NCBI RefSeq assembly: GCF_016432865.1
Contig: NC_067401.1
Coordinates: 451,732,001-451,796,000 of the forward strand
Length of the DNA stretch: 64,000 bases
DNA from: Antechinus flavipes
Lineage: Eukaryota
Direction of reading: 5' to 3'
The notes under the pieces are model-generated. The model was given only the letters and a program-made list of their open reading frames with translations. It was not told the origin of the DNA and searched no databases. A program made the translations under genes and the position numbers. Numbering within the stretch: the stretch's first letter is position 1; every line of letters begins with the position of its first letter. Shown piece after piece: positions 39,601 to 41,484 of this stretch.

Positions 39601-41484
39601 AAGAAAAGCAAAAGCAAGGCTTCCAAAGGGAGAATGTGAATCTAAGATGGAGGCAAGACTAGATCTTTGTCACATCTGAAGGCTCCTCCTAAAATAAATC
39701 TGAGGCTCTTCATGAAAAGGAGGAAGCAGCATCTGGCTCTCCCAAGAACAGCACAGCTGAGCCACAGGAGCCACCATCCGAGTTTCAGAGAGGAAATGGC
39801 CGCAGTTGGCTGTTACCTGCTCAGATGAACAGGGAATGCCATTTGCACCCAGATAACTAATGGAGACCCCTGTTGTCTTCCTGGGGCCTGCATTCAAGAC
39901 ATCCCAGAGAACTTCCCCAGACTTATCCCACTTCATGTGTTCAACATGGGGATAAGTGACACTGCCAGGAGGAAGCTATTTTTGAAATACTGGAGCCCCT
40001 GAGGGCCCAGGCCAATTGTCTCTCTTTACCCAATGAAGTCAAGGGGTACAAGAGAAAAAAATCCCTTTGGTGAGTTAATGGCTAGACATGGAACGTATGT
40101 AAGAAAGGATGTAATTTGCCTGAATGCAAAGACATGAAGTGACTCAGAGGGAAGAACCACCAAGAACACATACATAAATTGACAACAATGTAAATGGAAA
40201 GAATCATAAAACAATTTAAAATATATGTTGCAATTACAAAGAAGAAATATGAGAACTCCCTGCCAGGTCCTTTGCAGAGATGCAGGAGCCACACATAGGG
40301 CATTTGGCCAATTGTCATGTTTTCGCCCTCTATTGCTAACTTATATCGATTTTTTCCTCTTTTACCCTTAAAAAAGAGCCGGAGGGGAGAACACTGAAGG
40401 AAACCATGGTGATTATTATTAAAAAAAAAAAAAAACTATAGTGATTTTTAAAAGACAAAAATGCATTCGAAGAGGAATGTTTGACTTCAAGGAAGAGCTC
40501 CACAAAGTCCTTCCTGAACTCCTCTGCAGGGGCCAGAAGGTCTGTGGGTGTGAATTCTTGAAGAGAAAACCAGGATTTGTTTAACTGGTTTGGGGGATTT
40601 TTTTTTTTTTTTTAAACAAAGGAGAGCTCTCCAGGAGGGGAGAGAAGTTAGTCAGCAGGAGCTTATAGTCTAATGATGGAGACAATATGGAGGGGGATCC
40701 CATAGGAAAGGGCAGTCACTGCGCACGCCCCACGAGGCTATGGGGAGAATGCTGAGGAGGGGTCAGAAGTCCCCCTCCTACCTCCCCTCACCCCAAAGCC
40801 CTGTAGGAGGTAGGGGACCACCCCACCTCGGTCTCTCCCAGGGGCCCTGCCCCGCGGGCTGGGGCTGCTACTGCTCCAGCGCGCGGGCCCCCACACGGGG
40901 CTGCTGCTGGGCCCGGGCCCCGACACGGGGCTGCTGCTGGGCCCGGGCCCCGACACGGGGCTGCTGCTGGGCCCGGGCCCCGACCAGGAGCCGCGGCTGG
41001 GCCCGAGCCCCGACACCGGGCTGCTGCTGGGCCCGGGCCCCGACCAGGGGCTGCTTCTGGGCCCGGGCCCCGACCAGGAGCCGCGGCTGGGCCCGGGCCC
41101 CGACACCGGGCTGCTGCTGGGCCCGGGCCCCGACCAGGAGCCGCGGCTGGGCCCGGGCTCCGACACCGGGCTGCTGCTGGGCCCGGGCCCCCATACGGGG
41201 CTGCTGCTGGGCCCGGGCCCCGACCAGGAGCCGCGGCTGGGCCCGGGCTCCGACACCGGGCTGCTGCTGGGCCCGGGCCCCGACCAGGAGCCGCGGCTGG
41301 GCCCGGGCCCCGACCAGGAGCCGCGGCTGGCGGGGAAGGCCAGGACGCGCTGGGCTGAGCCCCAAACCGAGGTCGGCCGCGGTTCCGATCTGCAGCGGGG
41401 GCCCGGCGGCCGGACGCCCCTCGCGGGGGTGAGGAAGTTGCACTGCCGCGAAAGCGAGGGGGGCTGGCCCCAGGGCCTAGACAT
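3484..41484 (-). CDS. MSH4: MutS homolog 4 (meiotic MutS-gamma subunit), exons 1-14; 3' part (exon 15 onward) lies outside the window
   Basis: 14 exons with GT-AG boundaries join into one open frame (2323 nt, ending in phase 1). Peptides such as [42 protein letters not shown] and [13 protein letters not shown] match MSH4. Internal exon sizes match the recalled human structure except exon 3 (+3 nt). Confidence 0.97.
6969..7072 (-). CDS. MSH4: MSH4 exon 13 (104 nt)
   Basis: [34 protein letters not shown](M); donor gtaaga. Confidence 0.96.
8539..8675 (-). CDS. MSH4: MSH4 exon 12 (137 nt)
   Basis: [45 protein letters not shown]; donor gttcgt. Confidence 0.94.
9380..9455. repeat. Purine-rich (GA/GACA)n simple repeat
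   Basis: GAGAGACAGAGACACACAGAGAGACAGAGACACACAGAG. Confidence 0.75.
11605..11774 (-). CDS. MSH4: MSH4 exon 11 (170 nt)
   Basis: [56 protein letters not shown]. Confidence 0.96.
13610..14019. other. Assembly gap (410 N)
   Basis: Run of N. Confidence 1.
14434..14704 (+). mobile_element. Short solo-LTR-like element
   Basis: TG...CA ends, AATAAA at 14633-14638 followed by a U5-like tail, internal duplication of about 27 nt; no clean TSD. Confidence 0.55.
15136..15735 (-). CDS. Orphan 199-aa ORF in MSH4 intron 10, signal-peptide-like N-terminus; coding status unproven
   Basis: ORF from the track. Preceded by branch point CTCACTAAC (15793-15785), a C-rich tract and tacag acceptor (exon start 15756). 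No homolog recognised. Confidence 0.25.
   Translation of the reverse strand: MRWPSRAPFRLPSLCLLLLAARLLPKVSAQAGRPVGYPSRVLGNAPEGSFPFFMCVVVSLRYPKTTCLPYIMFEQVMFKSIYMTGHLTLLNFIAFGKVSAVAEGHKDRVRSELPSFVQGRGLIGRSGRSCLNVSGDIVRGPCSFLEILEEPMAINVLKKTVMKIPDVCMSAPWAEEEKVEKVWNIQDHQAEWDRGIPQG
16273..16337 (-). CDS. MSH4: MSH4 exon 10 (65 nt)
   Basis: [21 protein letters not shown](R); tag|...|gtattt. Confidence 0.93.
18186..18343. other. Assembly gap (158 N)
   Basis: Run of N. Confidence 1.
18609..18683 (-). CDS. MSH4: MSH4 exon 9 (75 nt)
   Basis: [25 protein letters not shown]. Confidence 0.95.
20004..20071 (-). CDS. MSH4: MSH4 exon 8 (68 nt)
   Basis: [22 protein letters not shown]; donor gtgcgg. Confidence 0.94.
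20627..20799 (-). CDS. MSH4: MSH4 exon 7 (173 nt)
   Basis: [57 protein letters not shown]. Confidence 0.96.
22250..26937 (+). mobile_element. Cluster of adjacent or nested ERV LTR-like elements in MSH4 intron 6
   Basis: Several TATA..AATAAA..CA units. Two end in related termini (TCTAGACCACTCAAACA near 24976, TCTAGACCTCAACA at 26937); AATAAA at 24834 and 26741; TATAAAA at 26599; another unit ends GTGTCACA near 26073. Internal boundaries approximate. Confidence 0.6.
27150..27560 (+). mobile_element. Degenerate RTE-type LINE endonuclease fragment
   Basis: Phrases resembling RTE endonuclease G-x-G-x-R-N-x-R and (E)IDYI motifs; frame broken. Confidence 0.4.
27901..28074 (-). CDS. MSH4: MSH4 exon 6 (174 nt)
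   Basis: [57 protein letters not shown](R). Confidence 0.96.
28634..29353 (+). mobile_element. Solo-LTR-like element in MSH4 intron 5
   Basis: TG...CA, CCAAT-like motifs, CTTATAAAAG at 29191-29200, downstream AGTAAA signal. Confidence 0.5.
29420..30105 (+). mobile_element. L2 LINE relic including its 3' end
   Basis: Pyrimidine-rich L2-like body ending in GATTGTAAGTACTTTGAGGGCAGAGACTGTC...TGGCACACAGCTGGCACTCTACAAATATTG. Similar relics lie at about 4450-5050 and 31250-31750. Confidence 0.6.
30425..30540 (-). CDS. MSH4: MSH4 exon 5 (116 nt)
   Basis: [38 protein letters not shown](K); donor gtaagt. Confidence 0.96.
31766..32134 (+). mobile_element. Solo-LTR-like element in MSH4 intron 4
   Basis: TGTTG...CTCATCA ends, AATAAA near 32035 followed by a U5-like tail. 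Confidence 0.5.
32511..32621 (-). CDS. MSH4: MSH4 exon 4 (111 nt)
   Basis: [37 protein letters not shown]; canonical splice sites. Confidence 0.95.
33746..33909 (-). CDS. MSH4: MSH4 exon 3 (164 nt)
   Basis: cag|CCACG...ACCAAG|gtaagg; [41 protein letters not shown]. Confidence 0.95.
35165..35872 (+). mobile_element. L1 3' end with A-rich tail (dasyurid-like)
   Basis: CCCTGTTTGTAGTGGCTAGAAAATGG...GGGGAATGGCTGAAT...GGGTCAATGCTGAAAAATTACCCATGCAT followed by a poly(A)-like tail. Confidence 0.8.
37456..37638 (-). CDS. MSH4: MSH4 exon 2 (183 nt)
   Basis: ag|ATTCATAC...CATTCAG|gtaaaa; [14 protein letters not shown]...KTPQMGHS. Confidence 0.93.
37765..37992 (-). mobile_element. MIR-family SINE
   Basis: AACATTTATGTAGC...AAGAAAACAGAGG...GGATCTGAACTCAAG...TCTGACTCTAGGCCCAG is an antisense MIR consensus. 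Similar relics lie at about 14150-14380 and 23020-23195. Confidence 0.7.
38623..38647. repeat. (AAGGT)5 microsatellite
   Basis: Direct reading of the sequence. Confidence 0.85.
40827..41484 (-). CDS. MSH4: MSH4 exon 1, containing a 15 x 30-nt coding repeat
   Basis: ATG at 41484 (A at -3; MSRP resembles human MLRP), with an in-frame upstream ATG at 41493. Flanks RPPGPRC and RWSSSSPSP resemble human exon 1. Phase-1 donor GAG|gtgggg at 40827; an alternative phase-1 donor GAG|gtagga is at 40782. Confidence 0.75.
40879..41328 (-). repeat. Coding minisatellite, 15 x 30 nt, in MSH4 exon 1
   Basis: Units encode [10 protein letters not shown] or [10 protein letters not shown] variants; every unit is exactly 10 codons. 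Confidence 0.95.

Follow-up and report, generated by a model that had tools for sequence, protein, structure and literature searches.

Is a minisatellite that sits inside a first exon translated, and what would it then do to the protein? These questions are raised by a tandem repeat at positions 40879-41328 of a 64,000-nt stretch of Antechinus flavipes DNA (assembly GCF_016432865.1, contig NC_067401.1, positions 451,732,001 to 451,796,000), referred to below as the window. The repeat lies in MSH4, which is encoded by the minus strand. An earlier note on this DNA had described the repeat as a coding array at the MSH4 N-terminus and had proposed that it could be a tunable phospho-array controlling MutS-gamma stability and crossover number. 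The explanation that we favour, with moderate confidence, is a lineage-specific, in-frame minisatellite expansion in coding exon 1 of MSH4, amounting to a tolerated lengthening of a disordered tail.

By sequence similarity, the gene hosting the array is the MSH4 orthologue. The proteins nearest to the window exons are all named MSH4, the closest public protein being MSH4 of the Tasmanian devil, in line with an orthologue of MSH4, for which MutS domains II-V without domain I and a closer similarity to MSH4 than to other MutS homologues are expected. The devil orthologue contains MutS_II, III, IV and V, with a folded core from about residue 221; in the window a MutS_III Pfam match was found on the exon at 20628-20801. 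Exon 2 differs from devil exon 2 in two residues. Below exon 3, tblastn and translation revealed more MSH4 exons down to 3485-3607, and the window covers roughly the first two thirds of the gene (Table 1).

The reading frame that contains the ATGs at 41493 and 41484 continues through the array to the donor at 40827, and the ATG-to-donor length is 1 mod 3. The acceptor of exon 2 (37639/37638) needs exactly one base for its first codon, which fits this donor. Of the two donors considered in the earlier note, 40827 is the one that suits exon 2: position 40782 was rejected, because it is in phase 0 in the ATG frame, whereas exon 2 requires phase 1. The devil model has the identical splice site (...GRER/DSYFGDK, the slash marking the junction). 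The ATG at 41493 is the first one after an in-frame stop located 44 codons upstream, and has a weak Kozak context (T at -3). The devil has GTG at this codon, and the ATG at 41484, the second one, was therefore taken as the conserved start. Downstream of the array exon 1 contains no ATG. The GC content of the exon is about 75%.

Read on the minus strand from 41328 to 40879, the array consists of 15 head-to-tail units, every one of them exactly 30 nt long. Tandem Repeats Finder (TRF) reported a period of 30, 14.4 copies, 0% indels and a score of 596, in agreement with the unit number and unit length given previously. Six of the 15 units are of type A, and the DNA of all six is identical, suggestive of a recent amplification or homogenisation; the remaining nine are B-type units with an SSSPV(S/W)(G/E)PGP-like sequence. 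The 150 residues include 51 Ser, 37 Pro, 33 Gly and 9 Trp, and there are nine SP motifs, eight of which are SSSP; our recount of the serines, of the SP and SSSP motifs and of the two unit types gave the same figures as the earlier note. Every unit terminates in GGGCCCGGGCCC, a palindrome (it equals its own reverse complement). The predicted fold of the array RNA (-331.5 kcal/mol; z = -4.6 versus shuffled controls) pairs via this palindromic core.

The earlier note had also stressed that the frame of the array is never broken. The array frame is indeed open, but this has no value as evidence of coding, because any GC-rich 30-nt repeat gives stop-free frames: there is no stop codon in any of the six frames of the array, and the open frame was rejected as a proof of coding. 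Two further open reading frames (ORFs) run across the array in other frames, at 40740-41432 (plus strand, 230 codons) and 40868-41443 (minus strand, 191 codons); they are by-products of the stop-free GC-rich repeat, not genes. The accompanying statement that non-coding minisatellites vary in unit length was borne out for most GC-rich arrays of the window, whose periods are not divisible by 3 and whose indels amount to 1-20%. The array at 63469-63984 (38 nt x 13.6), however, likewise has 0% indels.

Comparison with other mammals offered evidence of a different kind. The peptides flanking the array could be aligned without gaps to the MSH4 N-termini of the devil, koala, wombat, Dromiciops and wallaby, and the orangutan protein retains the GPR.. 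and SSSS..P.P landmarks of the exon 1 product. The placement of the repeat within the exon 1 frame, between MSH4 N-terminal segments, is thereby supported by the flanks of the marsupial orthologues. The 156-nt 5' flank is 88% identical to the devil DNA with 0 indels, and the two coding flanks together (156 + 51 = 207 nt) show 88-92% identity, again with 0 indels. In the comparison with the devil there were 17 gap runs in 400 nt of the promoter and 33 in the first 600 nt of intron 1, at 83-87% identity; the gap rate of the promoter predicts about 9 gaps in 207 nt, against the 0 observed in the coding flanks. The codon differences in the flanks are 10 non-synonymous and 6 synonymous, a ratio that suggests little constraint on the flank residues themselves. 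As far as sequence comparison can tell, indel-free flanks combined with loose residue constraint are typical of a segment that is translated yet disordered. The lengths of the arrays, 450 nt here and 225 nt in the devil, are both multiples of 3, and in the devil gene model, which has the same start and the same donor, the devil's own repeat is translated. These comparisons suggest that the array is quite likely translated in the normal meiotic mRNA, and that it very probably adds about 150 Ser/Pro/Gly-rich residues to MSH4.

The distribution of the repeat among marsupials indicates how it may have arisen. In protein alignments the wallaby has less than one array copy, with almost nothing between ..PFPGG and RWSSS.PSP. 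At the array site the wombat and Dromiciops have about one GSWSG.GP + SSSP copy and the koala has two 10-residue units. The closest counterpart is MSH4 of the Tasmanian devil (NCBI model, 1035 aa), in which the same exon has the same flanks and carries a repeat built from GSWSGPGP / ARWSS motifs at the same position. The devil array is half as long (75 residues), and consists of irregular units of 30, 48, 33, 36, 42 and 30 nt, a single A-type unit being followed by two other, 12-residue unit types, whereas the array of A. flavipes (150 residues) has a regular A/B pattern of 15 x 30 nt. Different units were amplified in the two dasyurid arrays, which suggests separate expansion or turnover after an older duplication-prone motif. 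Judged by these alignments, an older marsupial motif was expanded in the dasyurid lineage to give the array.

The effect on the protein was assessed by structure prediction. Single-sequence AlphaFold2 gave a predicted local distance difference test (pLDDT) value of about 40 and no secondary structure across the whole array. A Pfam scan of the exon 1 product did not reveal any family, and no solved MSH4 structure was found in the PDB copy searched. According to the model, the effect of the array is a longer disordered N-terminal tail ahead of the MutS II-V core. With the devil core beginning at about residue 221 and the array being longer here, the core would be located about 75 residues later in A. 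flavipes. The array starts at residue 53, and the distance of the first 52 residues, which are conserved, from the core grows by about 150 residues. Counted as far as the end of exon 2, the tail contains 14 [ST]P and 10 SSP motifs, as compared with 10 and 6 in the devil, and with 6-8 and 0-3 in non-dasyurid marsupials; two of the array units contain S-E contexts. For the conserved N-terminal peptide formed by residues 11-35 (41380-41454, minus strand) AlphaFold2 predicted a beta-hairpin with pLDDT 76-82. It is the only part of the tail predicted not to be disordered, and could be a docking motif.

Under the favoured explanation the ancestral marsupial motif that precedes RWSSSSPSP would have been amplified, and we infer replication slippage or unequal exchange as the probable mechanism. 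Amplification would be favoured by the self-complementary GGGCCCGGGCCC core and by a setting that is GC-rich, prone to minisatellites and probably subtelomeric. The window has at least ten further GC-rich minisatellites, and its upper 16 kb (48000-64000) has about 70% GC and many minisatellites with periods of 16-161 nt; the devil locus sits 2.1 Mb from the end of a 465-Mb chromosome. The outcome would be a disordered MSH4 N-terminal tail about 140 residues longer than in other marsupials. The array would persist because the tail tolerates changes in length and sequence provided that the frame is kept, and the rise in SSP motifs from 0-3 to 10 would be a by-product.

Several observations weigh against the favoured reading. 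Frame retention within the array is partly automatic, the units and the sub-repeats (AGC, GGGCCC) being multiples of 3 nt, and the near-neutrality of the array is assumed rather than demonstrated. The figure of 15 copies is also open to challenge: short-read contigs collapse in the array, and their depth there is uninterpretable. Transcripts provide a further group of such observations. The one RNA library available is a metatranscriptome of another organism, and comes from a relative about 4% diverged (tissue unrecorded, depth about 5); of six further runs of unrecorded kind, the three that were examined behaved like genomic DNA. A 1743-nt RNA contig, which matches 37456-37937, contains all of exon 2 and at least 299 nt of intron 1, and contigs of this library neither cover exon 1 nor contain an exon 1-exon 2 joint. 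The contig departs from the genome exactly at the exon 2 donor and keeps intron 1 upstream of exon 2; it looks like a transcript spliced downstream yet not from exon 1, one that may start in intron 1 or retain it. Isoform X2 of bilby MSH4 in the NCBI models likewise begins in intron 1, just before exon 2, and the Gracilinanus model has the exon 2 Met as its first residue. It may well be that some transcripts bypass the array. Such observations would be explained if the array were outside the working protein, with transcripts that start in intron 1 or bypass exon 1 and use a Met near the end of exon 2 (PQMGHS), or with the array spliced out as an internal intron, for which its many GT and AG dinucleotides would provide sites. 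We consider this alternative unlikely. The exon 1 frame, its start and both flanks are free of indels across long-diverged marsupials and resemble the orangutan product, which would be hard to explain for an untranslated segment, and an exon that has no ATG downstream of the array does not suit it either. In the short gene models exon 1 may simply have been overlooked. Short reads cover and assemble GC-rich sequence poorly; the RNA contig and the missing exon 1 cover carry little weight because the library is of another species, its tissue is unrecorded, its depth is about 5, exon 1 has about 75% GC, and DNA runs of relatives likewise have holes in intron 1. No transcript-derived protein fragments of dasyurids were found, in a search whose candidate list may have been crowded by the Ser/Pro/Gly-rich beginning of the query; this negative has little weight. 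It can also be supposed that the array is real but that its assembled size or unit order is wrong, through collapse, expansion or a mixture of haplotypes. DNA contigs of the same species have zero differences from the flanks and end 44 and 28 nt inside the array; within it only 58-77 nt pieces were found, nothing independent spans it, and six identical A units make a wrong assembly easy. The internal pieces nevertheless match the assembly with 0 differences, and the devil assembly, an independent one, shows an expanded array at this site. Contigs of two related species break at identical array edges and contain unit-junction pieces, from which it follows that the array is present in at least three related species. 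A mis-assembled array is, in our view, improbable.

The phospho-array proposed in the earlier note holds that the SSSP repeats are phosphorylated by cyclin-dependent kinase (CDK) and then, on the preceding Ser, by Cdc7-Dbf4 kinase (DDK), that this tunes a degron and hence MutS-gamma stability, and that the number of repeats sets the number of crossovers. The background quoted for it matches the literature: in yeast, DDK neutralises a portable degron formed by the first 50 residues of Msh4, and the N-terminal regions of Msh4 proteins are in general rich in S/T and contain candidate DDK sites (bioRxiv 10.1101/386458). DDK favours S/T that is followed by an acidic or phosphorylated residue, and on Mer2 it is primed by CDK. 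The C. elegans MSH-5 tail has 13 CDK motifs, and their number becomes important once MutS-gamma is weakened (PMC9173770), and according to a preprint a small lineage-specific tail of mouse MSH5 is essential. The abundance of [ST]P and SSP in the tail relative to non-dasyurid marsupials, and the two units in which S-E provides a direct DDK-type context, fit the proposal, although the SSP (10) and S-E (2) contexts are a sequence pattern that is common in any Ser/Pro-rich segment. Other features of the array are less favourable. The SP sites are of the minimal kind, K/R being absent from +3, and 6 of the 15 units, those of type A, lack SP altogether. Differences between units mix silent and replacement changes, so that the motif is not visibly protected; the residue changes in the coding flanks and among the units show no sign of selection on it. 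The devil amplified another unit mix, so that conservation does not extend to any particular array. In the view of the authors of the yeast study it is unclear whether other organisms regulate Msh4 in such a way (bioRxiv 10.1101/386458). On these grounds we think it very doubtful that the array acts in this manner. The S-P-x-x-E sequence also resembles an FBXW7-type phosphodegron, and for this reason even the direction of any phosphorylation effect is not predictable. A related idea, which joins the phospho-array to the condensates raised for the worm MSH-5 tail, is that the array is a functional low-complexity module in which nine evenly spaced Trp 'stickers' in a Ser/Gly/Pro spacer, together with phosphorylatable SSP, alter MutS-gamma clustering or persistence at recombination sites. 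By analogy such a module can be imagined, but its probability is slight.

We compared the array with known systems that it resembles. The C-terminal tail of C. elegans MSH-5 (PMC9173770) is, like the array, a lineage-specific, poorly conserved, disordered MutS-gamma tail packed with [S/T]P; in the worm, site number and not site position seems to be important. It belongs to the other subunit, is located at the opposite end of the protein and has no tandem DNA repeat, and its phosphorylation by CDK-2/COSA-1 has been demonstrated, whereas that of the MSH4 array is hypothetical. With 14 [ST]P and a pLDDT of about 40, the tail of A. flavipes is a disordered tail with at least 8 [S/T]P motifs, but it is the N-terminus of MSH4 and not the C-terminus of MSH-5, and is hence an analogue, not a member, of that class. 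The degron of S. cerevisiae Msh4 (bioRxiv 10.1101/386458) also lies in an S/T-rich disordered N-terminal region before the MutS core; it occupies the first 50 residues and is not repetitive, whereas the array begins at residue 53, behind the conserved peptide. With coding minisatellites in general (PMC1273636) the array shares a unit that is a multiple of 3 nt, a frame that is kept, a low-complexity site and fast turnover of copy number among relatives; about 1 in 20 human proteins are estimated to have coding-repeat polymorphism (PMC1273636). The array differs from them by its location in a core crossover factor. No description of an MSH4 repeat in marsupials, or of a variable number tandem repeat in MSH4, was found in the literature. 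The zinc-finger array of PRDM9 is a coding minisatellite whose unit is a folded domain of known activity, whereas the unit of the MSH4 array is not a folded domain. In summary, the array can be classed as a probable coding minisatellite within a disordered tail, and as analogous to the multi-site tails of MutS-gamma.

The surroundings of MSH4 are those expected for the gene. Upstream of it, on the same strand, the neighbour order ACADM - RABGGTB (with SNORD45) - MSH4 is intact; the same order is found on human chromosome 1p31. In the devil locus Prenyltrans is directly upstream of MSH4, and the non-coding DNA of the window is 84-92% identical to that locus, which identifies the source as a dasyuromorph marsupial other than the devil. 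Between RABGGTB and MSH4 there is another minisatellite at 42101-42418 (78 nt x 4, alternatively 154 nt x 2; 95% matches), 600-900 nt upstream of the MSH4 start, in the promoter region. Its devil counterpart is only a weak 27-nt x 3 repeat (devil locus 2396-2477), from which it appears that the promoter region also expanded in this lineage. Intron 1 contains an interspersed repeat (37753-38054); all short-read contigs break there, and in every DNA run the contig depth exceeds single-copy depth by a factor of thousands. More contigs of the RNA library lie on intron 1, at 37909-39099, with a depth equal to that of the exon 2 contig.

Table 1. Features of the MSH4 locus and its neighbours (window coordinates).
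Feature	Position	Strand	Basis or remark
In-frame minisatellite, 15 units x 30 nt (150 codons)	40879-41328	-	unit-by-unit reading and TRF
5' coding flank of exon 1, conserved; 52 codons from start ATG 41482-41484 to ...VLAFPA	41329-41484	-	gap-free marsupial alignment
Extra in-frame upstream ATG, would add MRR	41491-41493	-	GTG in devil
3' coding flank of exon 1 and first base of split codon; donor GT 40826-40825, phase 1	40827-40878	-	
MSH4 exon 2; acceptor AG 37640-37639, phase 1; ends ...PQMGHS	37456-37638	-	
MSH4 exon 3, start of conserved MutS core	33743-33874	-	tblastn and translation
RABGGTB exons	44688-46115	-	
SNORD45, in RABGGTB intron	47453-47536	-	83 bits
ACADM-like exon within ORF	56641-57927	-	

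The locus carries a caution for the reading of similar sequences: where a GC-rich repeat has a unit length divisible by three, an unbroken frame is not evidence of coding. Its wider interest comes from the gene, since MSH4 is a core crossover factor whose tail, in yeast, controls Msh4 stability. The length series found in marsupials, which rises from about one unit in non-dasyurids to 225 nt in the devil and 450 nt in A. flavipes, would make N-terminal control of mammalian MSH4 testable, and could show whether SSP number or the length of the tail influences MutS-gamma turnover or crossover number. If the array were a functional module, its fast-changing length would lead to heritable variation of crossover number in dasyurids. 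If it has no effect, the array would be another case of the disordered tails of essential proteins absorbing minisatellite expansions in GC-rich, recombination-prone regions.

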